A stretch of 64,000 nucleotides of DNA from Heterodontus francisci (GCF_036365525.1 NC_090387.1:44011404-44075403), one strand, 5' to 3'. Counted from the stretch's first letter, positions 7,354 through 39,092 are shown. Program-made: numbers and translations. The notes: generated from the sequence alone by a model not told the origin.

Positions 7354-7438
7354 TTAATTCAGTCGAAGATTTGGGTTTTTATGACTGTCATTTTTCAATC
7401 TTTCCTTTCCATCATTTGATATGTTATTTACCAGAATC
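7354..7438 (-). CDS. Terminal LRR/cap exon ([28 protein letters not shown])
   Basis: Acceptor ttgtttttcttttag, phase 2, LRR-cap-like sequence, TAA at 7356-7354. Confidence 0.85.
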
Positions 7439-10400
7439 CTAAAAGAAAAACAAGTTAAAGAGTTATAGAAATGAGAACACAAAAACTATACATTAAAATC
7501 CTTGAGTTGGTAAAACATTTAAACCTCAGAATATTGAAATGAAGGGCCATTTTGTAACAGCTGTTTTTGGCTGCAGTTCTTTCTTCATCCACAGGGGGAT
7601 GATGCAACTATTTTTAAAGGCGATTTTGTTCGTGTACTTGGGTCCAAAGGATGTTTGGATGCAGTGCAGAAAGGAAAATCAAGGCTGAAATCTCATATAC
7701 ATATTGCAGCACACTCAATTTTTCACCCAGCTAAAGTGCAATAAGAGAAAACTGCCCTAATACCACAAGAGCACTTTTTTTTTTACTATTTCCTTTAGAG
7801 CAAGGTACTGCAAAATCTTCAGTCTTACAAAAAACACAGCTAAAAGATATACAATTTCCTTTGACTGCAAGCAAGGTCATGGGAAATTGGGTAGTATTAT
7901 AAAAAAATATTCGCTTAAATATGCTGGACGTTTGAGCTGATTCTGAAATTAACTATCTCACAGAATAAATGCATTTTACCATTTGATACCCAACAATTAG
8001 CAGATGTTTTCAATATAAGATGTGTTATTACAGTGTGATTTTGTGATGCAGTGATGGCTGAAATTAATCATTATTTCAAATAGCACCAATTGGAAATCTT
8101 TTGAATTATTTGTATTGTTAAGTAAGATAGACAACACACTTACTAATTTTCTTACATTTCTCTTTTAATTCAATAGCATTTTAAATAAGGAATTTCTTCT
8201 CACAATGTGTAGTATTTCATTCTTAATAATACAAAAGTCAAATTGGTACAACGTAAACATGTGTTAATTTTGCTTCCTTCAGAGGTGGGTTCACAGATCC
8301 TGTAAACACAGACATACAAGACTGACATTTCAGGGTTGAAGTCTCCAAATTTTTAAAACTAGGAACAGGAGTAGGCCATTTAGCTCTTCGAGCCTGTTCC
8401 ACCATTCAATGAGATCAAGGCTGATCTGTGACCTTACTCCGTGTACCCGCCTTTTGTTCATATCCTTTGATACATTAGGCTAACAAAAATCTATTAATCT
8501 TAGTTTTAAAATTAATTATTGATCTAGCATCAATTGCCATTTGCAGAAGTGAGTTCCAAATTTCTACTACCCTTTGCGTAAAGAAGTGTTTCCAAATTTC
8601 ACTCCTGAAAGATCTGTATCTAATTTTTTTGTACTTTGCCCCCGAGTCCAAGACTCCCCAACTAACGGAGATAGTTTCTCTTTATCTACCCTACCTGCTC
8701 CCCTTAATATCTGGCTCCCCTTAATATTTCTCCTCATAATTTCACCTTTGGAGTCCAGGTATCATTCTGGTAAGTCTACACAGCACTCCCTCCAAGGACA
8801 ATATATCTCTCCCAAGGTGAGAACTACTCACAGTACTCCACGTGCGATCTAACAAGGGCTTTGTAGAGCTGAAGCATGACTTCGACCTCCTTGCATTCTA
8901 GTACTCTAGATATAATGGCCAGCATTCCATTAGTCTTTTTGATTATTTTCTGTACTTGTTCATAACATTTTAATGATCTGTTTACCTGGACCCCCACACC
9001 CCTTCCAAGTCTCTTGGGACCTCCACTGTTTCTAGCATTTCACCATTTGAAAAGTACCCTGTTCTATCCTTTTTAGGTTCATTTTTCCACAATTTTCTCC
9101 ATTTATTTAATCTATCAATATTTTTTAATTTGATGCTTCCATCTAGATTGCTTACAATGCTTTGTGTCATTGCAAGTATGTGGCTTAAAAATACACCTTT
9201 CCAATAAAAAGTCAGCCTTCTATGCATGATTGTAATGTACCAATAAATTCTAAATAAGCAATTTTTTAAACACATATACAATTACAATAAAATTCTTACC
9301 ACAACTCTTCAAGTGTGCCATTCACTTCCAAAGCACTTCTGAAGTAATCACTCCCCTTTTCAGTTATATTATTGTCTCCCAGTCTGCAAATAAGTATTGT
9401 CCATTTTATTATTTAGCTATCCACACAAAATAGGTAACATGTAAAATGAAATCTCTTAATTATCAAGGGCCTGAAGCACAGAACATATATTGAACACAAA
9501 ACAATGTAACACTTTTGTTTTAAAGGAGCCCCTCTCATAATGATATACAATGGACAATTACTTCCATTGTTTAACTGAAAATGATATAAAGATAAAATGA
9601 AAGCATTAACAGTTTTGGCCAAGGTTAAAGAGCAAAACTTGAAATGTAGCATTTATTCATAAGTTAGTAATTAACTCTCGTAATTAATTGAACTTCTTCA
9701 ATAAGGATACTTTATAAGATGAACAAGGTTAAAACTTGCTGAAAATAGATATTTGAGTTTAATTTTAAAGACAGTAATCAATACGCACCTGGCTTTATTA
9801 GTAACATAACAGGTTGCCAAAAAAAGCAGTGATTTCCCAAACAAGATAGTTGTGGGGAAGTTAAGTGAATGCAGGAGATGTCTGCTTTTAAAATCAGCCT
9901 TTCAAATTAGATTAAAATATAAATAAATAAATAAAGAAACAAACTTGAATCGCTCAGTCCATAATGCATGACACTTCCAAGTTCAAAAGAGTAAAGGAAG
10001 TGTTGAGATAATAATAAGTCCCAATAGAAAATCCAAAACTGGGCAATGTGGGCCATCAGTAGCAGCAGAATTACATCCAACCACAATCTGTAATCTCATG
10101 ACTCTACAATTGCAGTCAAGCAAGAGAATCAACCCTGGTTTAATGAAGAGTGCAGGAAAGCATGCCAGGAGCAGCACCAGGCATAACTAAAAATGAGGTG
10201 ACAACCTTGTGAAGCTACAACACAGGACTACATACATAGAAAACAGCAGAAGCAGCATGCATAGACAGAGCTAAACAATCCCACAATCAATGGATCAGAT
10301 CAAAGCTCTGCAGTCCTGCCACATCCAGGCATGAATGGTAATGGATAATTAAGCAACTAAACAGAAGAGGAGGCTCCACAAATATCCCCATCCTCAATGA

Positions 10401-13400: not shown

Positions 13401-16400
13401 TCTTAAGGGAGACAGGAGGGACACAAGCATCAAAACTCACACTGGAATCCAGAGAGTGGAAGATACGACTGATCTAGCAGGGTTAACAGAATGAAGCAAT
13501 GGAGGGAGGCTTTACAAACAACTGCTTGTAAAACGTAGCACAAAACTTCTTATGGAAGTGAGTGTGCATGGAGGGGATAGGATTGGAGAAAATTCTCTTT
13601 TGTGAATTTAGATTTAAACCCTTACCTTAATTCAACTAAGCTGCAATTTCTTTTTATTGCTTGTGCCATGTACATTGCACCTTCGTCCCCAATCTTGTTA
13701 AATTGTAAGCTGAAATAGGACAAAGACATATATTTTAATGCTCTTGTTTAATGAAAGCTGCACTCGTAGCTCCAAAATAACTGTTGATTAATATATGAGC
13801 AGTGTGGAACTGAGTCATACAGATCAGCAAGCTCCCAGGTTCAATCTTCAATCTGTGCTAAGTTAGCTGATTTAACTTTAGGTGGTGAAGGGGTGTTGCA
13901 GTTGGCTCAGTGCCCATAGGTGAAAGAGGGAAAATGAAAATGAGCCAGGCTTTCTCTCTAGATTTTGATCTAGTGACTCCTGCTCCGCGAGGACGAGGAC
14001 AGCATCAGGCACACTAATAAGCTTTTGTTTGAAACTATCTAGACTTGTGCATGAAGACATGCACCCTTGGAACCACCCTGCCACGGGAAGCAATATAGAA
14101 TCATAGAATTTTATAGCACAGAAGGAGGCCATTCGGCCCATCGTGCATGTGCCAGCACTTTGAAAGAAATATGCAATTATCTCACTTTCCCTGCCCTTTC
14201 AGTACCTTCAGGAAAGAAAATAGGGGAAAAAAGGAAAGTTGGATTTTCCAGGATGATGGTGCAGTGCTTTGGAGCACCAATGTGTAGAGATTTGTAGAGT
14301 GCAGGCTCTCACATGCATCCTCTCATGTGGTGAGTTTCCCCCCTTAGCCATGCCAACTGAAGGCCACACGAGGGTAGGAAAAAACCAGAGAAATAACTAT
14401 CCAATGTTGCTGATGCCAACTTCCTAAAGACCAGTATTACTGGAAATCTGGAGCAGGTAGTTTGTTCACATCTTTATCTGGGGATGATGTGTGGTAAAAA
14501 GGACGAGGAGGAAAAAAATAACAAAATCCTTACCAAAAAACACACAGCTTCCAAAGACTGATAAAACAATCAAACTGAAACATAACTTCCTAATACATCT
14601 GAAATCATATTTTTGTCAATTCTAGCACTTTGGCTTTGTATGTGTTTGGACATAAAATGTAAATAAAGCAAATTTTGAATCAAAACAAAATGAGAATGCC
14701 AACTCTTGGAATATTTAACCCATACAAAGCACATTAGCCATTGGACCCATGAAACTGCCCAGACATGAAAACTATCCAAAGTTGAATAATGCAGGTTATA
14801 AGCTTAGATATTGCCTGACGCCCTTGGTGGGCAGAGGAGCTTCATGCCCCCAAATTTCTTGGATAGCACTGATCGCACTAGCTTGCAGAGTGAGCTACAA
14901 GGAATCTTATTTGCATGGGTCATATGAGTAGAAGAGACACCAGAGAAATCTTTGGCAAATGCCTGGCAGGAGCTTTGGCGCCTATTTGGCCTTCGGGAGG
15001 GGGTTGCCCTACGTTGCCCCCAGACACCCTGCCCTGATAATAGTCCTATAGGCAGAGCCAATCTAGTCCCCACCAGTGGGGTCCACATTCAAAACTGTGG
15101 ATGCAAGTATGTCTCCGCTTTGCATACAGTCTACCACAAATAAACTGGATCACACTGGAGCAATACAGTAGGAACTCCTGGCTTAGGGAAAGTCCACTGA
15201 TGGTTCTGTCCCTGGCTGTCATTTGCTTTGCAGGAAGTGATGTCTCTTACAAGTATTGAGGAAGTGGTGGTGACCCAGCACACCTGCCAAAGGATTTCAG
15301 AGCATTTTTAGAAACAAATTTATGCATAATGCTATCATTGATTATTTGATAATTTATTTCTGTCTCTAGTTATAGCTGTATGATACAAGCTTATTTTTAA
15401 AATCTTAGTTTTACTAAAAAAACAAATAATAAAATGTACAAGTTAAAATGTTAGCACTTTAGCAAGTAAAGCGCAGGCTGCAATGAAAGTTCCTGCAGGT
15501 CAGTATGAGGAACCACAATGGAGTTTTCAAATCAAGTTACAAATAGTGCTACCCTGAAATTCTGCAATATGGGAATGTACTGCATGAGGAAAATAACAAT
15601 TTAGGGGGAAAGAGTACGTACCCAAAAACACGCAATGTTGCGTTGACCTCCAGAGCTTCAGCCATTGAACGGGCACCTTTGGCTCTGACAGTGTTTGCTC
15701 TTAATCTAGTGAGAACAAAGTGATTGTTAAAATTAAGAGAACAGCATTACCACAACGGCAGTGTAGCTAAATTATTTTATTCATAAATACTCCTGAAAGT
15801 TTGACATGTATTCTAATTTACCAGGTTTAATACCTACCCCAATGTTTTTAGACTGCTGTTTGTTTTCAAAGCTTCAGCTATTTGTGCTGCTCCTTTCTCC
15901 CCTATGGAGTTGTGCTTCAACCTGTGAAGATTCCAGATATTCAGTGACTGTATCATTTGTATCATATTCCTGGACTTTGAAGTTAGTGATATACAAATAT
16001 TATATAACACAATAATCCATCATTTCAATTATAGCATCTGATTTAATGATAATTCAGTTGGAACTATTCCTGATTAGCCTACTTACCAGTATTGCATGGC
16101 ATAAGACGAATTATCTACTGCATTAAATAAATAAATTGCAGGCTCTTACAACGTAGACCGAATAGAAAGCAGTAATTAGCATGTGTTAAAAAGGCTTCTT
16201 TCATAGTATGTTAATCTAGAATATAAGTATTACCCTGCTTGTCACTAGAACCAGGCATACAGTGGTGCAAATAACATTTTAAATCATTTTGAATGTTGAT
16301 AAAACAAGATTATTTAAACCAGCCAAAATAGAATGATGCGATATATGTTTACAAAAAAGACAGCTCACATGCCCTGAAACTCTATCATTAAAATCAGTTA

Positions 16401-19400
16401 CACAGAATCATGATTAACTTTGCCATCCTGTGAAGTTCATTAATCTGTACTTGCACATTCATAAATTTGTTTAAACTATCTTCTTTAAATAGTGAACGCA
16501 GATGATATTGTTAGCAAATTGGATTGGAAAAGTAACCATGTCAGACTATGAATTGGAGCATAAATAATATACACACAATTGATATAATCTAATAATCACT
16601 GAAACACCCAGAATTAATCATCACTTTTCTCCTAATTCAATCTTTTGCATCATTACCTTTAATGAGTCCTCCCAATTTCCATTATGTCACCAACATTCAG
16701 TACATAAACCAATATTCCAACAAAAAAAAATAGACAGAAAATGATAATCATCATAATTTTTAACAGTCTGATCTTTAAATCAGTCACAGTGAGGTACAAT
16801 TTCCAAATTTCTATAAAGTAAAAAAGTTATGAAACTAAAATTACACAGTTATAACAATTGAGAAACGATCTCATAATGAACTATTGACTTTGTAATTCTT
16901 GGGCTGTGAATTTTAAATCTGAAAAAATATTTTTCAATCAGCCTTCATTTTATGTCTCTATATTTTTGTATTTAACCAAAACTTGTAGTTCAGCTTTAAT
17001 TTTACTATCGTGCCATTTTAATGATGTGGTGTACAACAGTGGAACAGATATGGACATTTTACCTTAAGATTTCTATTCTACACATTTTACTTTTGAGTGC
17101 ATTTGCAATGATCTCTGCTCCTTCATCCTCCAGCATGTTTCCCTCTAAACTGTGAATAAAAATAAAATAATTATCATCTTTTCTTTAGCTCTGCCTCTGT
17201 GAACATAGAATGTATTTTTGAAACAATGAAGTGGTCATTGACTGAGTTATAATTGTTTGATTTACGTTCTGCTGGTATATTCCCACAAACTAAACAGTCA
17301 TTTCTGTCTTCCTGTCCTTTATCAACATTTAACCACAACTGGCACTTATATTGCAACTTTAATACAGAAAAACATTCAAAAGTTACTTAAAAGAAGCTTA
17401 AGGGAAAATTCGATGGTGAACCAAAGATGGAGATGTTTGGGGAATGACCAAAAGCTGGGTCATGGCAGTGGGTTTTTTAGGCGGAGGGCAGTGGGGTGGA
17501 GGTGGGGTGGGGGGTGGTGAAGCAGGTTGAAGAACGAATTTCAAAACATGGAGGCTAAAGGCACATCCATCAATTGTGGGATGAAGAGATGGAAAAATGC
17601 TCAAGAAGCTAGAGGCAGAGGAATGGAGTTTTCAGGCAGAGTTGTAGGCAGTTAGAGAAATCAGAAAAAGTAGGGCTATGGCCAGATTTAAATATAAGGA
17701 TGAATATTTTAAATTTGAGGCACTGGGGGATCAGGAGCCAATGTAGGTCAGTGAGGACTTGGTGTAGGCTAGAATATAGGCAGCAGAATCTGTTGAGCTG
17801 AGGTTTAATGAATGATGAAGGATGGAAGGCGAGCTAGTAGAAAATTGGAATAGTCAAATCTAGAGGTGACATAGGCATGGAAGAGGGTTTTAGCAGCAGA
17901 TGAGTTGAAATAAGGTTGGAAGTGGATGATTTTACAGTGGTGAAAATAGACAGGTAATGCCATTTCCCGAGGCACTTCACTGGTCTTCAGCTAGATATAC
18001 ATAGGGATACTGCTAGAACCCCCACAGAATTTCAGGGCTTAAATATCTTTCCTATGGAGAGTGTTTACTGAGCATTTATCTTTAAATTATACTGAAAGAT
18101 TTGAATTTATAAGTGGCTTTCATGACTTCATAACATCCCAAAGTGTTTTACAGCCAATGAAGTACTTTTCAAGTGCAGTCACGGTTATAATGTAGGAAAC
18201 ACATCAGCCAGTTTGCACAGTGATGTTGGTTGAGGGACACTGGGAAGAACTCCCCTGCTCTTCTTCGAATAGTACCATGGGATTTTCTACATCCACCTGA
18301 GGGGGGCAGATAGGGCCTTAGTTTAACATCTCATCCAAAAGACAGCACCTCTGACAATGCATCACTCCGTCAGTACTGCAGTGGAGAGTCAGCTTGAATT
18401 ATGTGCTCAAGCCTAACCCACAAACTTCTGACTCAGAGGCGAGATTGCTACCTTTTTGTAACAGCTGACTTCACATTGAGTGATCAGCACCACTGTACCC
18501 AAGAAAATATGAGGCAAGACTCAAACTTGCAGTAATTGGTCACAGTAAATAACTAGTCCTACAACAACTGCACAAGCATTTTAAACTAAAGTTGTTCATG
18601 TGGATTAAAAGAAAATGTGTTGGACCATTTTCTTTTAATGCTATGATTAATCACAAATTATTTTAATATATGCGATCAAATATTAATATTTTCATGTTCA
18701 GTGTTTTTGCTGTTTTAATAAATTTCAATAAAAATTTGAATCAAGTAAAAATTTGAAAATATTAGTCACAATATAAATATATCAATTGTAGAACTCAATT
18801 TGAAAGCCAAAAAGCAACCTTAATATTTACTATAGCCAAGTGTGAATATTATTTATAGTATCTTCTAAATGCAAAGTGTGAGACTCATCTGTCTGGTTAT
18901 CTGTATGTACAATATTAAATATACTTTCATTAACAAAAATTTAGTAGGTTTACCTTTAAAAAAACACAATGACTGAGTCACCAAAACTCCAGAACATTTC
19001 TAATACTTCTAGTTCAAGTAACAAAAAGCACATTTGAATACCTCAACGTCTTGACTCTTGAGAAAACAGACTCCAATCTTTGGAAACCTGAAGCTCCAGC
19101 TTTGCAGCCATCCAATTCCAAAGTTTCAATAGTTCTATGGTAAGAAAGAAGGTTTGCAATTGCAGTGCAATCAGTCACATTCAAAGAGACGTAAGAAAAA
19201 TTTACAACGTCACTGGTTTGGGAGGCAACTTGTTGGGTTAAATCTTCATTTGCTGCTTCATATAGACAATGAGAGGCTGTTAGCATTTGTCTTTTGTGTG
19301 CTGTATATTTTGGAATATTTTCTGGAGTTAACGCGTCTTGTTTTGGAACTTCAACTGCAGCAACATTTTTGATAGCAGCAAAGACTTCCCTTTCCTTAAC

Positions 19401-25400: not shown

Positions 25401-28400
25401 ATCACTGTAACCTCCTACAACACTTTGAGATCTCTGCGGTGCTCCCATTCTGGCCTCTTGCACATCCCCAGTTTTAAGCATTCCTAGGTCCTAAGCTCTG
25501 AAATTCTCTCCCTTAACCTCTCCACCTCTCTACCTCTGTCTCCTACTTTATGCTGCTTAAAACCTACCTTTTTGACCAAGCTTTTGGTCCTCTGTCCCAA
25601 TATCCCCTTGTGGGGCTCAGTATCAAATTTTATTTGATAATGCCTCTGTGAAGCATCTTGGGACATTTTACTATGTGAAATGTGTTATATAAATATACGT
25701 TGTTCCTGTTGTTATTAAAATACTAGTGGAAATCAACTAAATGTGGTAAGGGCTTGTATGCTAATACAGCACACAATAATTTGTAGGTTATAATATTATA
25801 CACAACTATGCAAGGTCAAAGCATTTCTATTTTGTTATTTAATCATGCTCATTTTGACACAGATAAAAACAATTCTAATTTTCTTTGCATTTATTATGCA
25901 GTGGAATAACTCACCTTTGATTTCTAAAACAACTACTTTTGAAATTGTGTGCTTTAGAGAGTCATGTTGGACTTCAAAAGAATACACCAGCCTTCTTTCT
26001 GTAGCTTTTGCATTTCTGAAGGTGAGCTGAGATATTAAACTGTATGCTCCACTTCCTTTGTGATTTTTCAAAGTCATGGCAATGTCATATTCTCCTTCTG
26101 TGAAGTATATCGTTTTGTCTTGTTCCTGTTCACTCTGAAAATAATCTCCTATCCTTCTGTATTCATGTTGTTTTACAGAAGATAAGGTGCTGTCCCATTT
26201 ACTAATGAGAACTCTCTGGAATTTATCCCCCTCCTCCCTGTACCAAGAAATAGTGATAGCTTTTGGTTTGAACCAGAGAACTGCACACGCCAGAGAGAGG
26301 GGATCATCCATAAGGAAATGATTTGGTTTAATAACATCTGTCACTTTGGGAGCAACTGAAAAACAAAGAGGAACAGAATCACCCAGTTGTTCTTTTCTAA
26401 CAAAAACTGCAATTCTTGTACTGTGCTTCATTGATCACTTTTTCCACCACTTCTATTTTAATGTTCCATTCTCTTTGAATAGAAGCTAAGTGATAGCCTT
26501 CAAGTGTTCTGATTGATTAACAACTGTTGATCTGTCTTCTCACATTTTGCTACATGGGTTGAGCACTAAGGGCCAGACTTTTAAATCCCGCTGGGGGCAG
26601 GAGCGGGTGTGAGCGCGATTTAAAAATTGCGTTCTTGGAAGTCGGCAGTGGGTCCCGCCGCCTCCGGAATGTGAAGCTGCCTTTAAAGGGACACAAGGAG
26701 GGAGGGAATGACAACTCCACACGTCTCCAATTAATCACCTCTTGAGTTCATTGAGGAGCTCATTAACAGGCTTGTCAGTGGCAGTTTAAATTTTCAAAGG
26801 AAGGGAACTAGGAAAAGCCATGTCTGGAATACAGCAGGGTGTACAAGTTGTGAACGCTGCGGGAAGGCCATGAGGGCTATGGGAAGGGCTGATTAACATG
26901 ACGCCATTGCAGGAACTGAAAGACTTGCATTTGCCGGTGGTGAGTTGTAGGAATCTGGAGAAGGATGTGAGGGCGTTGGTATCACATGTGCAACTGGGGT
27001 TGGCATGGGAAGGCCTGGTGAATGCACAAAGCCCGCTGAGGGAGTTCAGATGGGAACAGGCTACCCTGACATTGGACAGAGCAGCCAGGATGAGCTTCAG
27101 CAGATGCAACCTCCTGAACAGCAGGAGGCCAGAGGAGCACAGTGGGGACTGCAAGGTGAAGCAGGGGCTTCCTGACATTGGGTCTACTGCCCAAGAATCA
27201 AATGTCTGCAAATGACAGAGCTCCAATACCGCAGGCGGCTATACCTATCCAGGCAGACGGTCTCAGCCCTTTGTGCTCTGCTTCACAATGACCTGAGGCC
27301 TCATGGCCCCCATGGCAATTGCTTACCCAGCAGTCAAAGTCACCATCTCCCTGAATTTCTGTGCAACTGGGACGTTCAGTGATCAGATAGGTGGCATCTC
27401 GCAGTTGGCAGCTCATCATGCCATCAGGAAGGTCACGGATGCCACTTTGACACAGATGGGTCTGTGCAGCGACAGATGGCATTGGGTTTCGCCTCCATTG
27501 CTGGATTCCCCCAGGTGCAGGGCATCAACTGCACCCATGCTGCCATCAAGGCACCCAGTGACGAGCCAGTGAGATCCATCAGCAGGAAGGGATTCCACTC
27601 CCTCAACGGCCAACTGGTCTGCGACCACAACAAGAGCTTCCTCCATGTGTCTGCTTGCATTCCTGGCAGCTGCTGTGGTTCCTTCATCCTCCGCCAGTCC
27701 AGGCTGCCTCAGGTCTTCACTCCATCCCCCAAAATGTGTGGATGGATCCAAGGGGACCAGGCATATCCCTTGAAGACATGGCTACTGACCCCTCCACTGG
27801 TTCCTCAAACGGAGAACCAATGCTGCCTGCTCAGCAGGCCAACCATTGAAGAGGCCATTGGATTTCTGAAGAAGCGATTCCAGTGCCTGTACTGGTCATG
27901 TGGAGCCCTCCAATACTGTCCTGCAAGGATCCCTGTCATTATCATGGTCTGCTGTGCTCTCCATAGCATGACCCTCCAAAGAGGTGTGGATCTTGAGGAC
28001 AGTGAGGTCCAGAAGGAGCCAGCTCATCAGGGGAGGAGCAGGAGGTAAGAGAGGAGGAGGAAGAGGGGAATAACACTGAATAGAGAGATGCCCCTGCTGC
28101 GCGAAGAGGTGGCCTCCTCTAGGAAAAGGACCTCCCTCATGGCCTCCAGCATTAGATCCAGGCTGGCATCGATGATATGAGGGTCTGCCCTAACCTTCGT
28201 GCCAGGCCTCCAGCTCCCCTCTGGACAACCAGCAGCCTCAGAATTGGCTGTCTTGGGGAGTCTCCATGAGCCCCACAACTGATCTGATCCACTTCTATTC
28301 CTGACCCCACTGGCTCTAAGTGTTCAGGAAACCCATCCCCATATCAATTAAGGGCTCACCCATTTTAAAAAATGAATCTGAATCATTTTCCCACTGGAGA

Positions 28401-31400: not shown

Positions 31401-34400
31401 CTCCTTGTAAGAAATAGACGTTTACATGTTAAGAACAGATAATGTCTGTTACTTGTGTGTGTGGCTCAATTCCTCAAATTCAAATCAAGGTTCCCGAAGT
31501 GAAAATAAGACAGAATATATGCAATATTAGAATCAAAAAAATGAAATGTTCCTCATCATTTTCTTGATACCATTCTCCTTTATTATTACTCACCCTTGAT
31601 GGTTAAAGTAACAACTTTTTGTAAAGGTGTCTTCAAAGCTTCATGACTAACTTCACATTTGTAAGAAGCTCCATCATCTGCTTGATTGCCTTTGATGATT
31701 AGGAATGAAAGCAGATTAAACGTCCCATCTTGATTTTGTTGAGGTGATCCTGTAATCGCTCTTGAAGTGATATCAACTTGGTTTTCACTGTCTCTTGAGC
31801 CACTTTTTAACCAAGAAACAGAATGGTTTTTTGGGTAAAAGTTTTTCATCTCACAGGTGATTGTTTTATCTTCCCCAGGTTCAATGACAATGTTTACAGT
31901 GTTTACTGAAACTGTAGGAGGTGCTACAAAGACACAAGGAATAAAGATAAATATTATATTCCTTATATTAGCTTTCATTATTGATGTCATCTTAAAATGC
32001 AACGTGTTCATATTAGGCATGGATAGGACCAGATGTCGGCAATTTAGCCCCTCGAGCCTGCTCTGCTACACAGTGAAATAATGGTTGATTTGCAGCTTAA
32101 TTCCATCTTTGCCCCATATCCCTTAATACACTTGGTCAACAAAAATATAGAAATCTCAGATTTAAAATTTACAATTTGTCCAGCATCAACTGCTATTTGC
32201 GGAAGTGAGTTCCAAACTTCAACCACCTTTTTTGTGTAGAAGTGTTTCCTAATTTCATTCCTGAAAGGCTCTAATTTTTAGACTGTGCCCCGTAGCCCTG
32301 GACTCGCCAATCAGTTTCTCTCCTTCTACCCTATCAACATATCCTTCTATTCCTTTCTCCCTCATGTGTTTATTTGGCTTGCTCTTAAATCCATCTACGC
32401 TAGTATCCTCAACTACTTCTTGTGGTAGAAAATACACATTCTTACCACTCACTGGGTAAAGAAATGTCTCCTGAATCCTTACTGGATTTATCAATGACTT
32501 CCTTATATTTGCAGCCCCTAGTTTCCGAAAATGGAAACAACTTCTCTACATCTGCCCTATCAAACCCTATCATAATCTTAAAGATCTCCACAGATCACCC
32601 TTCAGTCTTCTCTTTTCTAGAAAAAAAAACAGCCCCAGTCTGTTTAATCTTTCCTGATAGGTAGAACCTCTCGGTTCTGGTATAATTCTAGTAAATCTTT
32701 TTTGCGTCTTTCCCAGTGCCTCTATATGCTTTTTTTTTTATTAATATGGAGGCCAGAACAATTCTCAGAACTCGAAGTGTGGTCTAACCAAGGTTCTATG
32801 CAAGTTTAGCATAACTTCTTTTCAGTTCTATCCCTCTAGAAATAAACGCCAGTTCTTTGTTTTCTTTTTTAATTACCAGATTAACCTGCATTGCTACTTT
32901 TAATGATTGGTGTATCTGTACCCCCAAATCCCTCCGCTACTCTACCCCATTTAGACACTTAGGGCTGCATTTTACTTTGGCCGTAAGGGTGCACTTGGCG
33001 GAATCGCCGTGTTATTCAGCGTGGCGGCTCATTTAAATGGCCGGGGTGGACTCCCCACCCCGATGGCATGGAGGGGGTGGGCTGTCCCTCCCCGGCAATG
33101 GTGCCAGAAGCCTATGTATAGGCGTTGATGCCATTTTTAAAGGGCTTCGAGCCCTACATTGCAATGTACATATTTACGGGAATACTGATGTATTCCCCCC
33201 CAATAAGCATAGAAGTAATTACCTGCCCCCCACCCCCAAAACACTTACCTTGTGCTGCCAACCTTTACTCCCCAAAGTTCATCAAGTTTAAACTTTACCC
33301 CTACCCACCACCCACTAGACCAATGAAATTAATCTGACCCCGTTCTCCCGCTCACGCACTGAAAAACTTACCTGCTTCCCCCTCCCCACCAGTGTCATGC
33401 CTCAGATCCCCAGATGGGTATCCAAAGGCGTGGGAGTGTCAGCCACCGGCAGCTGTCTCGCTCCAGAACGGACGGCAGGAGTGGGTAGGTTATCAATTCA
33501 TTTATTAAAATAAATTTAAATATTTAAATTTTGCTCCAATTGCCCAGCTAACGAAGTTAAGGACTGTATAAGATTAAAAGAAAAGGCCTATAAAGTTGCC
33601 AGAAATAGTAGTCAACCTGAGGATTGGGAGGATTTTAGAATACAGCAAAGGAGGACCAAGAAACTGATAAAGGGAGAACAGAATATGAATGTAAACTAGA
33701 AATAAACATAAAAATGGACTGTAAAAGCTTCTATAGGTATGTAAAAAGAAAATGTTTGGCTAAGACAAATGTTGGTCCATTGAAAGGTGAGTCAGGAGAA
33801 TTTATAATAGGGAATAGAGAAATAATAGAGAAGCTACATGATTAATTTGTGTCTGTCTTCACTGAGGAACATACAAGAAATCTCCCAGAATTAGAGATCC
33901 AAGGGACTAAGGAGAATGAGGAATTGAAGGAAGAAGGCTGTATTGGAAAAATTAATGGCGCTGAAGGTTGATAAGTGCCCAAGACCTGATATTCTACATC
34001 CCAGAGTGTTGAAAGAGGTAGATATGTAGATAGTGGATGCATTGGTGATCATCTTCACTATTTAAGAAGGGAGGTAGAGAGGAAACAGGGAAACCTGTTA
34101 GCTTTACATCCGTAGTAGACAAAATGCTAGAATCTATTCTAAAGGATGTGATAAATCCACACTTGGATAATAATGATCTGATTGGGCACAGTCAACATGG
34201 GTTTATGAATGGCAAATCATGTTTGATGAACCTGTTGGAGTTTTTTGAGGATGTTACTAACAGAACTGATAAAGGGGACTTGGTGGACATAATATACTTG
34301 GATTTTTAGAAGGCTTTTGATAAAGTCCCCTACAGGAGGTTGGTGCGCAAAATAAAAGCACATGGGATAGGAGGTAATATACTGGCATGGATTAAGGATT

Positions 34401-37400
34401 GGTTAACAGGAAGAAAACAGAGAGTAGGAATAAATGGGTCATTCTCATGTTGGCAGGCTGTGACTGGTGGGGTACTGCAGGGATCACTGCTTAGGCTCTA
34501 GCTGTTCACAATATATATCAATGAATTGGATGTGGGAACCAAATGTAATATTTCAAAGTTTGTGGGTGACACAAAACTAAGTGGGAATGTGTGTTGTGAG
34601 GACGATGCAATGTGGTTTCAAGGGGATTTGGACAGACTTAGTGAGTGGGCAAGAACATAGCAGATGGAATATAATGTGGAAAAATGTGAGGTTATCCACT
34701 TTGGTAGGAGGAATAGATGTGTGGAGTATTTTTTAACTGGTAAGAGATTAGAAAGTGTAGATGGACAAAAGGGACCTGGGTGTCCTAGTCAATAAGTCAC
34801 TGAAAGCTAACATGCAAATGCAGCAAGCAATTAGGAAGGCTAATGGTATGTTAGCCTTTAGCGCAAGAGGATGACAGTACAGGAGTAGTGAAGTCTTGCT
34901 TCAATTGTATAGAACCTTGGTTAGACCGCATCTGGAATACTGTGTGCAGTTTTGGTCCCCTTACCTCAGGAAGGATATTATTGCCATAGAGGGAGTGCAA
35001 TGAAGGTTCACCGGGGTGGCGCGACTGTCCTATGAAGAGAGATTGGGGAAACTGGGCCTGTATTCTCTAGAGTTTCAAAGAAAGAGAGGTGATCTCATTG
35101 AAACCTACAAAATACATAAAGGGATAGACAGGGTAGATGCAGCTAAGATGTTTCCCCTGGTTGGGATACAATTTCAAAATAAAGGGGAAGCCACTTAGGA
35201 CAGAGATGAGGAGAAATTTCTTTACTCAGAGGGTTGTGAATCTTTGGAATTTTTTATTCCAGAGGGCTGTGGAAGCTCAGTCATTGAGTATGTTTAAAGC
35301 AGAGACTGACAGATTTCTAAATACCAATGACATAAAGGGATATGGGGATAGTGTGGGAAAAATGCATTGAAGTGGATGATCAGCCATGATCATATTGAAT
35401 GGCAGAGCAAGCTCGATGGGCTGAATGGCCTACTCCTGCTCCTATGTTCCTATGAAACTCATGATTTCCTTGGGTTTTAATAAAATAATCAGGTTTCATA
35501 CTAATGTTGGTTGAATTTTCTGTCTATTGTTTTGGCAAATTTAGATGTCAGACCTGCAAAATGGATCATTTTTCTATTTTAAAAATCAGTAGGGCAGTTA
35601 TAGTGTGGTCAGATGCGAAGCAATGCTCTTTAAATCACATCTCAAGACTATGCCTGAACTGTAGCCTCAGATCGGAAAACCTTTCTGTGCCATGTTGAAT
35701 GTTTACATTTGCTTTACTCGCCATCCTTATTTGAGTGAGAGTGCCCATTTTATTGCCAGATTGTGCTGTAGGCCCACTAGTATGTAGGCTGAGAGGCCAA
35801 ACTCATTTCATATAAAACAATTACAACTAGCACATAGCAGACAATTATTCATTACTCTGGACATAGATATGGGCACTAAAGATAGAGTCCACCTATGAAA
35901 ACCTCAGAGAAGTGATCCTTCTCGAGAAGTTCAAAAACTTGCTCATTAAAACCGACCTGGAGGAACAAGAGGTTCCAAGAGCCAGGCAGGCAGCAATCCT
36001 GGCTGCTGAATATATGCTTGTCCACAAGCCCTTGCTCCAAAGGAAACCCTGCCCTAGTCACCTCCAAAAACCTGAAAAGGATAGAAGGTGGGAGGATGAT
36101 AGGAGGATGAACAGCCATGGGCAAGAAGGGGAAGCTGGAAACACAGGGGGCCCTCCTCAGGCCAAAGAGGAAGGTGCTGAGAGCACGAGTGATGTCCAAA
36201 AACCTGTGTGTTTCCACTGTAATAAGGCAGGTCACCTATGAGCTGGCTGCTGGAAGTTATGGGGAAAACCTGTAAGATTAATCAGGGTACACCAGACCAG
36301 TGCAAGAAAAGAGGCCCTGATGAAAAGCACAGCAGACCAGGCTGTGGCTTTAACTGCAGCAGTAAGACCCAGTAAATATAACTCTACGAGGGAAGGAGAA
36401 CTTAACAAAATCCCTGAGAATTACCAGGGTTTAGTGTCCAGAGGAAAAGATGCAATGAGAATTTTTTTTTTTTATGATGCAGCATAAATGAGATGTGTGG
36501 AGTTCAGTTGATTGAAGATCTCAAAACAGGTTTATTAAACAGCTAACTATTACATGCAGCACAGAGCTAACCATTTACAGGACTTGCCTCTTGGTGTTAC
36601 AGTAGCAGAATGAGACTGGCATGTTGTCACATGACTGCATCCTGGTACTCAGCTCATTAGCATACTAAGATCTTAAAGGGATATCACTCTTAAAGGCAAT
36701 CACACAATAAAAATGACCCTATACCCCTTGAATGAGGCAAGTAAGCCCAAAGTCATACTTAGGGATACAGGAGCCACCCAATCCCTTCTGCTGGTAAAAG
36801 GCATGACCTTTCCCCAGAGGGTGGTTTATTATTTTACTTAGATCAGTTTTAGGTACAATCAAGCTCACCTTTTACTTTGTTAAAATCAAGAAAACCTGTC
36901 CGATTGGTTCTTTTATGAACAGTTCTGGAAGAATTACACTTCAGGAATTATTCCTAAACTCACCTGTCACTGACAGAGTAACTCTCCCCGTTGCTTTATC
37001 GGAAAATATTGTAACTGTGCAGGAGTATGACCCGATGTCATAGATTGTAACATTTTTTAGGAGTAAAGAAGCATTTGCTTTGCTTATTTCATTTAAAGAG
37101 AGACTTGATCCTGGTCTGTAGCTTTCATATTCTCCAAAGTCGAACAAACAAACTGTTTTTTCATCATTTCCCACTCTGTGGTTCCATTCAATCACAATGT
37201 ATCGCAAATCAAGCGCAACTGTGGGGGAAAATGCACAGCTGAGCAGTACATCTTTACCGATTGTGGCATTGACAGCTGGGCTGACCACCAGCTCCAGGGA
37301 AGCTGCATTAAAAAAAAGATACACATATAAAAAGGCTCTAAACATGGTTAATAAATCATTAATTGAATTGTTTTTTATTTAGTAAAACTCCACCGGGAAA

Positions 37401-39092
37401 AATGGCCAACAGTTTTACGGCAAGGAGTTGCAAAATGGTGGGAGAGGTTGGGGACACCTTGGCCATTTATTCAGCACTGTTTCCCACCTGGTAGCTGGTC
37501 CAATGGAGCGGCCTGCAATCGGAGCTGGTGGGAATTTGGTGATCGGACGGGGGTGGGGCGGGACGTTGGTGACTGGGAGGAGGTTGATGATTGTGGGGGA
37601 GGTATTCGATCGGGACGGGGTGGGGTGGTGATCAGGGGTGTGGTGTTTGGGGGGTGGGGGAGGGTTAGTGATCGGCAGGGAGGGCTTGGTGATGGGGGGA
37701 TTGGTGATTGAGGGAGGGGGCGGGAAGGCCAAATGTGGTCCAGCAAGCAAAGGCCCTTGGGAGTGTTGTGGAGCCAGAACGACCACTCCTGCTCTTCCTG
37801 GTTCCACATGAAACTTAAAAAAAAAATAAACTACTTATTTAGTGGAGGTCACTTGCTAGGCTGCAACCATGCCTCTTTTCTGGATCTTCTCTTTATCAAA
37901 CAGAAAACTTTTCTAAAACAGCGGGGTAGAAATTGGACCTTGTTGCTTCTGTTTTATGGGCAAAGCGAGGGACAACTTAGTAGACCTAAAGAATGTCTGG
38001 AGGATGTTTGACCCAATATTGGATCGGACTGCATTTCAGGCACTCTAAGAGGCTGCCCAAGACAGACCACCAGGTCAACATAAGAAGGAAAGGTAATTTC
38101 CTCTGAAGAGATTGGAAGGGCATGTTACTTAAATGGTGGACATTAACCAAATATAAATTGGACATATCCACAATGACAGAATCAATGCAAAGCTGCTTCA
38201 GATATATTGAGGTAAATTTGAGATCAGAGACCCCACTTTCCTGTTTCAGTTTCTGGATTTACCATGGATCCCTTGTGGGCCTTCTTGTCTTTTGGAAAGT
38301 GGCAGAATAACATTACACACCAAACAAATTTATTAAACAAGGCTAATTTATTGATTTGCAAGGCTACAGGGAAAGGATGGGGGAGTGGGACTAGCTAAGT
38401 TGCTCTCACAGAGAATCACAGCGGACACATCGGGCAAGTGGCCTCCTCCTGTGCTGTAACTATTTTATGATTTTAGTTTATTTTGATAAAATAGTTGCAG
38501 TTTTGATGGGTTCAAATATATTTTTGAATAGGTGCTCTTTCGGAGTTGAATAGACAATTACTTAAATCGGCTTGGTGCTGTCACTTTTGGAAAGTATTTC
38601 TCAGCCTGTCTAGTTCATGCTGGAGTCTGAAGCTAATACACAAAAAAAAATCAGACCAGAAAGTTTTTGTGATGGTGAGGAAAGGCCAGAACTGGCAAAT
38701 TAGAATATTATGCACATTACAGTTTAGAGCAGCAGTCACAACTATTTATTACTTTCCATTTCCTGAAGATAGTTTAGCTTAAGAACTACTGTAAAATCTT
38801 CAGCAACACAATTGTTTTGGGTGAACTGTAACATACCAAGTATTAGCTCTATTTTTTCACAAAAAGATCTTTTAACCAGAATAATTAATTGTGTATCTTT
38901 CCATCTTCTAGGGAATGATTCCCTGGTACAAAGGCCTACTTTACAATATACTCTTTCATGCCCATAGGTTAAGAGAGAAATTGACTTCCTTGTTAGTAGT
39001 AACAGATGCAAAACAAGTTTTAAAGGAAATCTCCACTTACCTGTTAAAGACATGATGTAAAATATCATCAATTCTACTAGAAAGCAGTTCAT
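7354..39092 (-). CDS. Multi-exon gene: predicted type I membrane Ig-NLR receptor (SP-IgV-IgC1-TM-IgC1-like-CARD-NACHT-LRR), about 1290 aa
   Basis: Coding exons 39092-39041, 37302-36964, 31923-31594, 28901-28791, 26355-25915, 22924-22487, 20779-19042, 17149-17063, 15705-15622, 13709-13626, 9383-9300, 7438-7354. All junctions are GT-AG. Phases are 1 up to the NACHT exon and 2 through the LRR exons. Total 3873 nt = 1290 codons + TAA, with no internal stop. Confidence 0.8.
8357..9160 (-). mobile_element. CR1 LINE 3' fragment
   Basis: aggaacaggagtaggccatttagc (reverse of the CR1 tail); [18 protein letters not shown]. Confidence 0.75.
9300..9383 (-). CDS. LRR exon ([29 protein letters not shown])
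   Basis: 84 nt, phase 2-2, acceptor ttatttgcag, donor gtaaga. Confidence 0.92.
10015..12293 (+). mobile_element. Decayed CR1/L2-clade LINE (shark family)
   Basis: RT fragments [53 protein letters not shown]. 3' tail gctggcctagccagc..cccacatccc. Confidence 0.85.
12330..13500 (-). mobile_element. Old, highly decayed LINE RT remnant
   Basis: [23 protein letters not shown] (RT GVPQGS motif) and [18 protein letters not shown]. Confidence 0.6.
13626..13709 (-). CDS. LRR exon ([29 protein letters not shown])
   Basis: 84 nt, phase 2-2, acceptor cctatttcag, donor gtaagg. Confidence 0.92.
15622..15705 (-). CDS. LRR exon ([29 protein letters not shown])
   Basis: 84 nt, phase 2-2, acceptor ttctcactag, donor gtacgt. 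Confidence 0.9.
17063..17149 (-). CDS. LRR exon ([30 protein letters not shown])
   Basis: 87 nt, phase 2-2, RI-type LRR consensus, acceptor ttattcacag, donor gtaaaa. Confidence 0.9.
17335..17950 (-). mobile_element. L2 LINE 3' fragment
   Basis: ggagccaatgtaggtcagtgagg, reverse complement of the L2 core seen at about 54880-54900. Confidence 0.65.
18115..18468 (-). mobile_element. SINE, same family as 44396-44842
   Basis: gaactcccctgctcttcttcgaatagtaccatgggattttctacatccacctga is the reverse complement of the core. Confidence 0.7.
19042..20779 (-). CDS. Exon 7: NACHT NTPase + HD1/WHD/HD2 + first LRRs (NLRC3/NOD-like)
   Basis: 1738 nt, phase 1-2. Walker A GVAGIGKS, Walker [11 protein letters not shown], sensor-1 [24 protein letters not shown] motif [17 protein letters not shown]-like IETLELDGC. 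Acceptor aattacag, donor AG|GTATTC. Confidence 0.95.
22487..22924 (-). CDS. Exon 6: CARD (death-fold) domain plus linker
   Basis: 438 nt, phase 1-1. Acceptor ttctcaacag, donor G|GTAAGT. CARD pattern [18 protein letters not shown]...[25 protein letters not shown]...LYLGL. Confidence 0.88.
24197..24214 (-). CDS. Candidate 18-nt symmetric microexon (DRDGHA)
   Basis: tgtttcag|ACAGAGATGGTCATGCAG|gtaact, phase 1-1, frame-preserving, lying between the Ig and CARD exons. Confidence 0.35.
25105..25712 (+). mobile_element. L2 LINE 3' fragment
   Basis: Similar to 54700-55290 (gacctacattggctc; ttatataaatatacgttgtt). Confidence 0.75.
25915..26355 (-). CDS. Exon 5: second Ig C1-like domain, predicted cytoplasmic, with long insertion and F-strand Cys replaced by Phe
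   Basis: 441 nt, phase 1-1. Acceptor tttgtttttcag, donor G|GTGAGT. Motifs [43 protein letters not shown]. Confidence 0.85.
26570..28463 (+). mobile_element. Decayed PIF/Harbinger element (transposase fragment) in Ig-NLR intron 4
   Basis: [69 protein letters not shown] at 27464-28048. Ends gggccagactttt and aaaattcagctc. Confidence 0.85.
28791..28901 (-). CDS. Exon 4: transmembrane helix ([37 protein letters not shown])
   Basis: 111 nt, phase 1-1, not in the ORF track. Strong acceptor (tcttcc, T-run, gtag), donor A|GTAAAT. About 23 uncharged residues followed by a basic RR stop-transfer. Confidence 0.85.
29990..30505 (+). mobile_element. CR1 LINE 3' fragment
   Basis: [35 protein letters not shown]; tail gggccgaatggcttccttctgtgctgt. 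Confidence 0.85.
31594..31923 (-). CDS. Exon 3: Ig C1-set domain (extracellular)
   Basis: 330 nt, phase 1-1. Acceptor tgtctttgtag, donor G|GTGAGT. C1 motifs [35 protein letters not shown]. Confidence 0.92.
32015..32960 (-). mobile_element. CR1 LINE 3' fragments (composite)
   Basis: [15 protein letters not shown]; ATGHSLKIR; CR1-type tail in reverse. Confidence 0.7.
33550..35455 (+). mobile_element. Decayed CR1 LINE
   Basis: [31 protein letters not shown]; [26 protein letters not shown]; [14 protein letters not shown]; 3' tail gggctgaatggcctactcctgctcctatgttcctatg. Confidence 0.9.
35880..36820 (+). mobile_element. Decayed Gypsy-type LTR retroelement gag/protease remnant
   Basis: [19 protein letters not shown]; zinc knuckle [13 protein letters not shown]; aspartic protease [13 protein letters not shown] near 36755. 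Interrupted by an unrelated insert of about 250 bp. Confidence 0.7.
36964..37302 (-). CDS. Exon 2: Ig V-set domain (B7-H6/tapasin-like)
   Basis: 339 nt, phase 1-1. Acceptor tttttaatgcag, donor G|GTGAGT. V-set motifs [30 protein letters not shown]. Confidence 0.92.
39041..39092 (-). CDS. Exon 1: signal peptide ([17 protein letters not shown])
   Basis: ATG at 39092, hydrophobic 17-aa leader, consensus donor ACAG|GTAAGT, phase 1. This is the usual leader-exon layout of Ig-superfamily genes. Confidence 0.8.

Follow-up and report, generated by a model that had tools for sequence, protein, structure and literature searches.

A conserved elasmobranch gene predicted to join a B7-type ectodomain and a CARD-NACHT-LRR module in one membrane-spanning chain

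Structure and transcription of the gene

The window analysed here is a 64-kb stretch of the horn shark (Heterodontus francisci) genome, without a single run of N over its whole length. Its minus strand carries one gene of 13 exons encoding a protein of 1318 amino acids, for which the predicted order of domains is a leader, an IgV domain of the B7 type, an IgC1 domain resembling that of B7-H6, a transmembrane (TM) helix, a C1-like Ig domain, a CARD, a NACHT and about seven LRRs (Table 1). All seven exons whose coordinates an earlier sequence-only reading had given or implied are present, together with their splice sites. That reading had put the gene at 12 exons and 1290 amino acids. The frame it described is open, and skipping the 84-nt LRR exon at 9383-9300 does keep the frame, but this exon had been missed and the 12-exon version is not the annotated form. 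AG acceptors and GT donors were found at each exon checked, and the exons from IgV through CARD are phase 1-1, in agreement with the canonical, phase-matched junctions claimed before; beyond the NACHT exon the phase is 2. The LRR exons were located by a loose pattern scan combined with tblastn of orthologues. The peptides of all 13 exons are exact and consecutive substrings of the RefSeq predicted protein P0158 ("NLRC3-like"), in which one split-codon residue separates neighbouring exon peptides. Downstream, an ATTAAA lies at 7208, about 150 nt past the stop of exon 13. Upstream, the candidate regulatory element GAAAGTGAAAG is located 77-87 nt before the ATG, just upstream of the 5' end inferred for the RNA contigs; it is the single match in the 64-kb window, where 0.1 were expected. 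As for flanking genes, the window yielded nothing beyond fragments of LINE reverse transcriptase and ORFs of low complexity.

Table 1. Exons of the gene and a candidate upstream element, in positions of the window
Feature	Position	Strand	Evidence
Exon 1 (coding part), leader peptide	39041..39092	-	ATG 39092; donor GTAAGT; ends phase 1; P0158 1-17 exact
Exon 2, B7-family IgV	36964..37302	-	Pfam V-set 3.6e-10; P0158 19-130
Exon 3, IgC1 of B7-H6 type	31594..31923	-	Pfam C1-set 2.6e-14; P0158 132-240
Exon 4, stalk and single predicted TM helix	28791..28901	-	Hydropathy; RNA contigs join it to exon 5
Exon 5, C1-like Ig domain, predicted cytosolic	25915..26355	-	Pfam C1-set 1.1e-5; both flanking joints in RNA
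Exon 6, CARD and conserved linker	22487..22924	-	Pfam CARD 1.6e-9
Exon 7, weak FISNA-like lead-in, NACHT, winged helix, HD2, LRR start	19042..20779	-	Pfam NACHT 2.8e-32
Exon 8, LRR, 87 nt	17063..17149	-	Frame check and P0158 match
Exon 9, LRR, 84 nt	15838..15921	-	Frame check and P0158 match
Exon 10, LRR, 84 nt	15622..15705	-	Frame check and P0158 match
Exon 11, LRR, 84 nt	13626..13709	-	Frame check and P0158 match
Exon 12, LRR, 84 nt	9300..9383	-	Orthologue tblastn; splice sites cag/ and /gtaaga; P0158 1264-1290
Exon 13, last LRR and stop	7354..7438	-	Frame check and P0158 match
Candidate IRF-E/ISRE-like core GAAAGTGAAAG	39169..39179	+	Motif match

The two critical splice joints, from the TM exon to the C1-like exon (28791>26355) and from the C1-like exon to the CARD exon (25915>22924), occur in contigs of three and four runs, respectively, each with CT..AC ends on the plus strand. 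The four joint-bearing runs come from two studies, and their label 'RNA?' is a guess. Unique intron sequence is without coverage in X5-X7, and in X1 exon depth is about 115 against an intron depth of at most 15, which indicates that the reads derive from RNA and not from DNA. Single contigs of X5 and X6 (2691 and 2701 nt, respectively) span both joints. These contigs were viewed across a 6-kb stretch, and the Ig exons upstream of it are deduced from lengths: the geometry fits leader, V, C1 and TM exons (832 nt) preceded by a 5' UTR of about 60 nt (59-65 nt is implied), and on the downstream side it fits the CARD exon and about 0.9 kb of the NACHT exon. No partial protein matching these 2.7-kb contigs was found in the protein database. 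Since the spliced contigs link the exons in their assembled order and the window is free of N runs, nothing points to an assembly join in the interval from 28791 to 22924, an artefact for which the sequence-only reading had allowed, and its proposal of one gene with one mRNA is borne out by both joints and by the fused architecture of 12 species. Minor alternative isoforms may exist, as the reads table has 83 more joints beyond those listed. Read-through of the TM-exon donor would meet a stop after two codons (..RRTSK-stop); a tailless B7-like isoform made in this way is possible but unsupported, neither AATAAA nor ATTAAA being found within 1.5 kb after this donor.

Domains of the predicted protein and their conservation

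Pfam and PDB sequence searches were run exon by exon, and whole-protein work was carried out on database proteins (P0158, P0001 and others). The signal peptide and the TM helix were called by hydropathy alone: just two segments reach TM grade, the leader (KD19 1.82) and residues 248-272 (KD19 1.85, the maximum of the protein). The leader lacks a basic n-region, and one of its conserved residues is acidic or polar. The IgV exon, which holds a Cys40-Cys112 pair, an extra invariant Cys69 and two invariant sequons (N94-A-S and N101-x-T), matches B7-H3 first among PDB sequences (2.7e-15), then B7-H4, TAPBPR, B7-H6 and PD-L1. The IgC1 exon, with the pair Cys154-Cys220, scores 2.6e-14 as C1-set versus 9.6e-5 as C2-set_2 in Pfam, and its top non-antibody PDB match, extending over the whole exon, is B7-H6/NCR3LG1 (3.3e-16). 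These PDB matches confirm the B7/B7-H6 character ascribed earlier to the V-C1 part, whose closest non-fused database relatives are turtle NCR3LG1 proteins. The helix (about 248-272) is followed by a basic NRR and presents an invariant face of T257, T261, C265, T268 and F271. We propose that the signal peptide would place both Ig domains extracellularly or on the luminal side of an endosome or phagosome, with the sequons predicted to be glycosylated, and that the C1-like Ig domain, CARD, NACHT and LRRs, a portion of about 1040 residues, would be cytosolic behind the single TM helix. This topology is supported by the invariant Cys pairs and the two sequons of the ectodomain, as against the Phe that takes the place of the second Cys in the C1-like domain.

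In that domain, indeed, the first Cys (C301) is kept and the second is Phe (F404) in 12 species out of 12. The Pfam C1-set match on exon 5 is limited to the N-terminal 30 aa, and across 45 aa the exon shares 38% identity with the C1 exon of the same gene (E 1e-6). An AF2 model of the domain has seven strands (core pLDDT 70-80, mean 61), and with this model Foldseek returned Ig constant domains and B7-H6 (3pv6_A, rmsd 2.4). A loop of about 30 aa is disordered, a two-copy complex prediction (P0158 278-425) scored 0.09 against a mark of 0.32, and the exon has no leader of its own. We suggest that the C1 exon was duplicated to the cytosolic side and that its disulfide was then lost.

The remainder of the protein is a CARD-NACHT-LRR module, as the sequence-only reading had recognised, with the corresponding Pfam domains and intact ATPase motifs. 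PDB matches of the CARD exon are led by ICEBERG (1.9e-8) and the NOD1 CARD (8e-4), followed by caspase-1 and RIPK2. The Met of this exon, which in the horn shark sits 11 codons past the acceptor, is L or V in four of the 12 species (Chiloscyllium, Rhincodon, Heptranchias and Narcine), while the residues YFP432-434 upstream of it are invariant. The Met is therefore not conserved where the preceding residues are, and the exon is an internal coding exon and not a start exon, in line with the in-frame acceptor noted earlier. The NACHT exon contains, besides NACHT, an NLRC4_HD2 domain (2.1e-12); a FISNA match at its residues 8-57 (E 0.0068) stays below the cut-off, with 17 bits against 28.1. Its PDB matches are headed by NLRP3 (7e-41) and NOD2 (8e-33), and the ranking contains neither NLRC3 nor the NOD1 NACHT. 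Walker A (GVAGIGKS, with the lysine K666), Walker B (DGLDE), sensor-1 (TSRP) and the His motif of the winged helix show no variation among 11 species; with its NLR ATPase motifs intact, the protein is a predicted ATPase. The LRRs comprise six exons of 84-87 nt and a start inside the NACHT exon, and LRR_6 is detected at 5e-13 in the orthologue P0001.

Twelve elasmobranch species, four rays and eight sharks, share this fused architecture, in orthologue models that are Gnomon predictions and can borrow from one another. Identity of the Heterodontus protein to sharks and rays, respectively, is 82 and 76% for V, 82 and 72% for C1, 77 and 57% for C1-like, 76 and 64% for CARD, 87 and 79% for NACHT, and 91 and 82% for LRR, the most conserved part. 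Invariant columns of the alignment number 47 of 113 in V and 50 of 145 in CARD. Narcine and Pristiophorus have predicted isoforms that lack the CARD and keep Ig, TM, NACHT and LRR. No NLR-only product was found among proteins of 318-1011 aa, where the best match is 33% identical. From the RNA joints, the architecture shared by 12 species and the lack of an NLR-only model, we conclude that the fusion is real and old.

Relation to known receptors

Like B7-H6/NCR3LG1 and the B7 family, the shark gene encodes a leader, an IgV, an IgC1 and a single TM segment in one phase-1 exon each. B7-H6 is set apart from other B7 proteins by a constant domain of the C1-set rather than the C2-set. B7 proteins have a short signalling tail, whereas the shark protein carries instead about 1040 aa of C1-like Ig, CARD, NACHT and LRR. 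B7-H6 is the ligand of NKp30, a ligand rather than a receptor, and the conservation of the shark ectodomain is far above what would be expected of a B7-H6. With NOD1, NLRC4, 'NLRC3-like' proteins and NLRP3 the shark protein shares the order of CARD, NACHT-winged-helix-HD2 and 28-aa LRRs of the ribonuclease-inhibitor type encoded by 84-nt exons; by sequence, its CARD is closest to ICEBERG/caspase-1 and NOD1, and its NACHT to NLRP3, then NOD2. It differs from cytosolic NLRs by its predicted signal peptide, Ig ectodomain, TM helix and cytosolic Ig domain, and by having only about seven LRRs. To our knowledge, the vertebrate NLRs characterised so far are all soluble in the cytosol and lack both a signal peptide and a TM helix. 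Once the elasmobranch orthologues are set aside, the best hits share 30-36% identity, and automatic naming calls most of them NLRP3-like and some NLRC3-like; the nearest paralogues are 'NLRP3-like' genes expanded in elasmobranchs and amphibians, at just this 30-36%. The RefSeq label NLRC3-like may, judging from these comparisons, be a convenience name and not a sign of orthology. IL-1R and TLR receptors resemble the shark protein in working principle only, with an Ig or LRR ectodomain, one helix and a signalling domain of homotypic interaction; theirs is a simple adaptor domain, whereas the shark protein would carry an entire STAND ATPase switch equipped with sensor repeats.

Ig, TM and NACHT in one chain are common to the shark protein, as read from its sequence, and to two proteins of the sea cucumber, an invertebrate. 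AjNLRC4 is described as membrane-localised, with extracellular Ig and intracellular NACHT, and without CARD and LRR (PMC8699970); AjNLR-new combines Ig, TM and NACHT in the opposite topology (PMC13133943). Both are reported to act on the cytoskeleton and phagocytosis (PMC8699970, PMC13133943). AjNLRC4 having, on that account, neither CARD nor LRR, the Ig-TM-NACHT chains of sea cucumber and shark are most likely of independent origin. Sea anemone (anthozoan) NLRs with three to five N-terminal TM helices are predicted to be membrane-bound (PMC5094078); these are multi-pass proteins without an Ig ectodomain, restricted to cnidarians and known from prediction alone, unlike the single-pass shark protein with its Ig domains. 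The novelty claimed for the architecture stands in part. In the openly accessible papers searched, no description of an Ig-TM-NACHT protein in vertebrates was found; however, these sea cucumber and sea anemone proteins have been published, and RefSeq already contains models of the orthologues for at least 12 species, auto-named NLRC3-like or NOD1-like.

Proposed function and its significance

Starting from the gene model, its single spliced mRNA, the domain identities, the intact catalytic motifs and the conservation between sharks and rays, all of which we hold to be very probable, our best explanation, taken as a whole (probability about 0.55), is a type I membrane protein that would act as a membrane-resident NLR signalosome with an extracellular partner. 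The mechanism itself, a signalosome working as a coincidence detector, is more tentative and somewhat less likely than not. The ectodomain, which is very conserved, would be engaged by a partner of the host that is conserved as well, an NKp30-like receptor being the lead candidate, and the resulting clustering would license or nucleate oligomerisation of the NACHT. The NACHT-LRR part would be a nucleotide-driven switch and the CARD, of the ICEBERG/caspase-1/NOD1 type, the output, recruiting a partner with a CARD, for instance a caspase-1-like protease or RIPK2. The sequence-only reading had likewise put forward a surface or endosomal receptor that would bind a ligand, cluster and signal through RIPK2/NF-kB or a caspase, a part of its interpretation that is hypothetical. 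Such a system would amount to hard-wired 'reverse signalling' out of a B7-type ligand, in which the predicted CARD-less isoforms of two species could be modulators. The LRR being the most conserved part counts against outside-in signalling, as it argues that cytosolic sensing, and not the ectodomain, is the primary trigger.

The conservation of LRR and NACHT, together with the invariant switch motifs, is what one would expect of a sensor, and one may imagine the information flowing the other way. The NACHT-LRR would sense a conserved cytosolic ligand and oligomerise, clustering the B7-H6-like ectodomain and raising its avidity for an NKp30-like receptor, so that an infected or stressed cell reports itself to NK or T cells while the CARD gives a parallel, cell-intrinsic signal. 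The kinship of V-C1 with B7-H6, a ligand, and with turtle NCR3LG1 also speaks for such a display, and the CARD-less isoforms make a CARD-independent role plausible. However, the CARD is itself conserved, which points to an output beyond display, and a change of recognition through clustering is speculation; we hold this scheme to be unlikely, at roughly one chance in four. Less probable still is that the Ig-TM part merely sites an ordinary NLR, activating or inhibitory, on the plasma membrane, phagosome, endosome or ER, with an ectodomain devoid of signalling ligand. The vertebrate NLRs already known depend on being brought to membranes: NOD1/2 and NLRP3 are palmitoylated, and NLRP3 also binds PI4P. 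The shark protein would be the hard-wired counterpart of this lipid-mediated recruitment; the TM helix and the NLR are intact, and the invariant Cys265 of the helix could be acylated. Nevertheless, the identity of the V domain (76-82%), its invariant columns and its two invariant sequons go far beyond the needs of an anchor or stalk. Finally, two neighbouring genes, one B7-like V-C1-TM and one CARD-NACHT-LRR, with a functionless read-through mRNA spread by automatic annotation, could be argued from the stop behind the TM exon, which allows a tailless B7-like protein, from the horn shark Met 11 codons after the acceptor and from exons phase-compatible by family habit, so that phase matching alone is weak evidence, but this reading is already largely refuted and very improbable: contigs run unbroken through both joints in two runs, no polyA signal follows the TM exon within 1.5 kb, the Met is not conserved (in four species the next one would truncate the CARD) where the residues before it are invariant, the conserved C1-like exon, which lacks a leader, has lost the disulfide in every species, and no NLR-only protein of the locus was found among those of 318-1011 aa.

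Returning to the membrane-resident signalosome, we give an even chance to the idea that the shark protein is the founding vertebrate transmembrane NLR, one chain that would wire recognition of the B7/NKp30 type to a CARD-NACHT-LRR signalosome and integrate lymphocyte contact with cytosolic danger sensing. Textbooks keep vertebrate NLRs, as soluble sensors of the cytosol, apart from B7 proteins, as short-tailed surface ligands; a conserved gene that fuses both in a single chain breaks this division. It would offer a natural test of how membrane tethering and induced proximity govern the activation of NLRs, a question not yet settled for NOD1/2 and NLRP3, and it is relevant to how the B7-H6/NKp30 axis evolved. 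With exons symmetrical in phase, the gene shows cleanly how exon shuffling can give rise to a new receptor, and a distinct class of receptor lies hidden behind the names 'NLRC3-like' and 'NOD1-like' in the annotation of at least 12 genomes. Such a receptor suggests a direct route from lymphocyte contact to innate signalling in the oldest jawed vertebrates with adaptive immunity.

Gene structure, annotation and flanks

The window holds no runs of N, and its CpG depletion is of the vertebrate type. We re-derived the exons on the minus strand, from 39092 to 7354, using stop-free segments and splice sites; exons were searched singly, and whole-length comparisons were made with database proteins. 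The gene comprises 13 exons with AG acceptors and GT donors throughout, phase 1-1 in exons 2 to 6 and phase 2-2 in the LRR exons. Every exon listed by the sequence-only reading was recovered, the phase 1-1 that it saw from the IgV to the CARD was borne out, and Pfam matches on single exons agree with its domain order of IgV, IgC1, IgC1-like, CARD and NACHT. Its total of 12 exons and 1290 aa did not hold, as it lacked the 84-nt LRR exon 12; the true product has 13 exons and 1318 aa. The RefSeq protein P0158 of Heterodontus francisci (1318 aa) holds all 13 exon peptides as exact, consecutive substrings with one split-codon residue between neighbours, and the NCBI pipeline prediction is exactly this 13-exon gene, under the name "NLR family CARD domain-containing protein 3-like". 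The predicted proteins of Rhincodon (P0163, 1290 aa) and Heptranchias (P0162, 1289 aa) lack one or other of the 84-nt LRR exons (compare exons 9 and 12), so that LRR number, judging from these models, may vary by isoform or species. The 12-exon form matches the Heptranchias X2 pattern.

Features of the gene and its surroundings (window coordinates)
Feature	Coordinates	Strand	Content and Pfam match
Exon 1	39092-39041	-	leader, donor GTAAGT
Exon 2	37302-36964	-	IgV; V-set 3.6e-10
Exon 3	31923-31594	-	IgC1; C1-set 2.6e-14
Exon 4	28901-28791	-	stalk and TM
Exon 5	26355-25915	-	second, C1-like Ig; C1-set 1.1e-5
Exon 6	22924-22487	-	CARD; CARD 1.6e-9
Exon 7	20779-19042	-	NACHT; NACHT 2.8e-32, NLRC4_HD2 2.1e-12
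Exon 8	17149-17063	-	LRR
Exon 9	15921-15838	-	LRR
Exon 10	15705-15622	-	LRR
Exon 11	13709-13626	-	LRR
Exon 12	9383-9300	-	LRR, 84 nt
Exon 13	7438-7354	-	last LRR and stop
Intronic element	25060-25660		probable SINE-like repeat
IRF-E/ISRE-like core	39169-39179		GAAAGTGAAAG
Pro/Ser-rich ORF	39855-40313		tandem repeat-like units (SPPHLSHSPPPSVARFPRAT...)
LINE reverse-transcriptase fragment	50524-52122		RVT_1 2.1e-29
LINE reverse-transcriptase fragment	45591-45932		RVT_1 1.4e-5
LINE reverse-transcriptase fragment	53040-53417		RVT_1 1.2e-3

The IRF-E/ISRE-like core, 77-87 nt ahead of the ATG and just before the inferred 5' end of the RNA, is unique in the window, where 0.1 occurrences were expected; its position suggests interferon-regulated expression of the gene. 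The Pro/Ser-rich ORF just upstream of the gene matched nothing in Pfam; it is probably simple-repeat or satellite sequence. Neither flank of the window yielded a further recognisable cellular gene, the LINE fragments aside.

One transcript for the Ig-TM and NLR parts

Phase 1-1 exons are habitual in both families, so whether this is one gene or two is a real question, and the eleven stop-free codons before the CARD-exon Met prove nothing and leave it as such. We therefore turned to Logan contigs from four sequencing runs (X1, X5, X6 and X7; two studies, two organism codes), aligned to window 22860-28850; the second organism differs from the window at 5 sites in a 444-nt exon piece, two of them synonymous. 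Two of the junctions that the earlier reading had proposed were found in spliced contigs, with GT..AG ends on the minus strand: 28791>26355, from TM to C1-like exon, in X1, X5 and X6, and 25915>22924, from C1-like to CARD exon, in all four runs. In X5 and X6 a single contig (2691 and 2701 nt) carries both, the C1-like exon occupying contig positions 898-1341 and 892-1335, respectively. Before this exon the contigs have the length of leader, V, C1 and TM (832 nt) and some 60 nt of 5'UTR; after it, that of the CARD exon (438 nt) and roughly 0.9 kb of NACHT exon. Contig content beyond 22860-28850 is inferred from these lengths. Coverage over unique intron sequence was zero in X5-X7, and depth in X1 was about 115 in the exon versus 15 or less in introns; the material thus behaves as RNA and not DNA, for which the run records offer only a guess. 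In each of the four runs the intronic element between the C1-like and CARD exons reached a word depth of about 10^4 and showed numerous internal joints and loose ends; it is probably a SINE-like repeat that is transcribed and very abundant.

Conservation across the junction leads to the same place. In a 12-species alignment, the residues YFP (432-434 of P0158) upstream of the CARD-exon Met are invariant, and the Met itself is not: Chiloscyllium, Rhincodon, Heptranchias and Narcine have Leu or Val at this position, and their next Met falls within the CARD. This rules out the CARD exon as a conserved start exon, in keeping with the in-frame acceptor that the earlier reading saw before its first Met. 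A CARD-NACHT-LRR-only product would be expected at about 890 aa; the top match of the NACHT exon in the size range 318-1011 aa was 33% identical, and no NLR-only model of this gene appeared in any species. We thus rejected the CARD exon as the start of a separate NLR gene, given the variable Met, the invariant upstream residues and the lack of such a model. Separate mRNAs with their own polyA sites had been named as the outcome that would count against the fusion, and no canonical polyA signal occurs within 1.5 kb after the TM exon. Altogether, these results show that the Ig-TM and NLR parts are encoded by one mRNA. Two predicted isoforms, P0001 (Narcine X4) and P0155 (Pristiophorus X2), skip the CARD exon and join the C1-like exon directly to the NACHT exon, a skip that the 1-1 phase of the CARD exon keeps in frame; such forms could be modulators, either natural dominant-negatives or CARD-independent.

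Distribution, affinities and constraint

With the NACHT exon as query, a search of 1.84 billion representative proteins returned one close match, P0001 (76% identical, 1168 aa), a RefSeq model of the electric ray Narcine bancroftii with V-set, C1-set, NACHT and LRR; its residues 426-999 align to the exon and 425 residues precede them. A search with P0001 recovered the same architecture in Pristis, Mobula, Hemitrygon, Pristiophorus, Carcharodon, Heterodontus, Scyliorhinus, Chiloscyllium, Mustelus, Heptranchias and Rhincodon, most models also carrying the CARD. A profile of 11 orthologues found the fusion in elasmobranchs only; among proteins of 725-2306 aa, none from a chimaera or bony vertebrate matched over both parts, a result that reflects the sensitivity of a word-seeded search and is not proof of absence. 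An ENA protein of 1250 aa, P0181, has I-set/Ig_2, NACHT and LRR Pfam matches and a weak profile match (E 4e-19, 22% identity); it may be another, possibly invertebrate, Ig-NACHT combination.

B7-H3 (2.7e-15) ranks first for the V exon, followed by B7-H4, TAPBPR, B7-H6 and PD-L1, and B7-H6 is the top non-antibody match of the C1 exon (3.3e-16); the V-C1 ectodomain resembles B7-H6. The CARD is nearest to ICEBERG (1.9e-8), followed by the NOD1 CARD, caspase-1 and RIPK2, and the NACHT exon to NLRP3 (7e-41), followed by NOD2 (8e-33), with a FISNA match under the Pfam threshold in single-exon searches. Since the closest paralogues are "NLRP3-like" genes of elasmobranchs and amphibians (30-36% identical), the "NLRC3-like" name is, together with these affinities, to be taken as an automatic label and not as a claim of orthology.

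Membrane-grade hydropathy is confined to two segments, residues 248-272 (KD19 1.85) and the leader (1.82); the third peak, at 834-852, falls within the NACHT fold. By sequence, the layout is type I. The disulfide pairs of V and C1 are retained, with one exception, Ser for the first C1 cysteine in Narcine (P0151/P0001), and the sequons N94-A-S and N101-x-T are invariant. So is a third V-domain cysteine, Cys69, a possible partner in an intermolecular disulfide. Along the TM helix, one polar face (T257, T261, C265, T268, F271) is likewise invariant, a hint that the helix may pack against itself or a partner; Cys265 could be acylated. Invariance extends to the Walker A, Walker B, sensor-1 and winged-helix His motifs, and by these the ATPase switch is intact. 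Mean identity of Heterodontus to other sharks and to rays is, respectively, 82% and 76% for V, 82% and 72% for C1, 69% and 51% for TM, 77% and 57% for C1-like, 76% and 64% for CARD, 87% and 79% for NACHT, and 91% and 82% for LRR, so both ends of the molecule are under strong constraint.

The C1-like exon is conserved, has no leader of its own and is similar to the C1 exon of the same gene (38% over 45 aa, E 1e-6). Its first Ig cysteine is kept and the second is Phe in 12 of 12 species, a loss of the disulfide that would be expected once an Ig domain came to lie in the reducing cytosol. AlphaFold, given the orthologue alignment, modelled the domain as a sandwich of seven strands (mean pLDDT 61, 70-80 in the core) that includes a disordered loop of some 30 residues, and Foldseek matched the model to Ig constant domains, including B7-H6 at rmsd 2.4 Å. 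In Mustelus X2 (P0161), an extra 34-aa segment after the TM repeats the start of this exon, either by alternative splicing or as a partial exon duplicate.

Novelty and proposed mechanism

The orthologue proteins are already public as unreviewed predictions. Full-text searches of the open literature found no vertebrate Ig-TM-NLR, and a whale shark NLR survey does not mention one; the vertebrate fusion is thus very probably undescribed. The closest published proteins are AjNLRC4 and AjNLR-new of sea cucumber (PMC8699970, PMC13133943) and multi-TM NLRs of sea anemones (PMC5094078).

The mechanism we favour is a membrane-resident NLR signalosome. Nearly as likely is the reverse direction, in which cytosolic sensing would cluster the B7-H6-like part as a signal to NK or T cells. 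A role of the Ig-TM part as an anchor alone is less likely, given the highly conserved V domain. In the favoured signalosome, the ectodomain would be engaged by a conserved host partner, for which an NKp30-like receptor is the obvious candidate because of the likeness to B7-H6; this would lead to clustering, with the NACHT-LRR remaining the switch and the CARD serving as the output.
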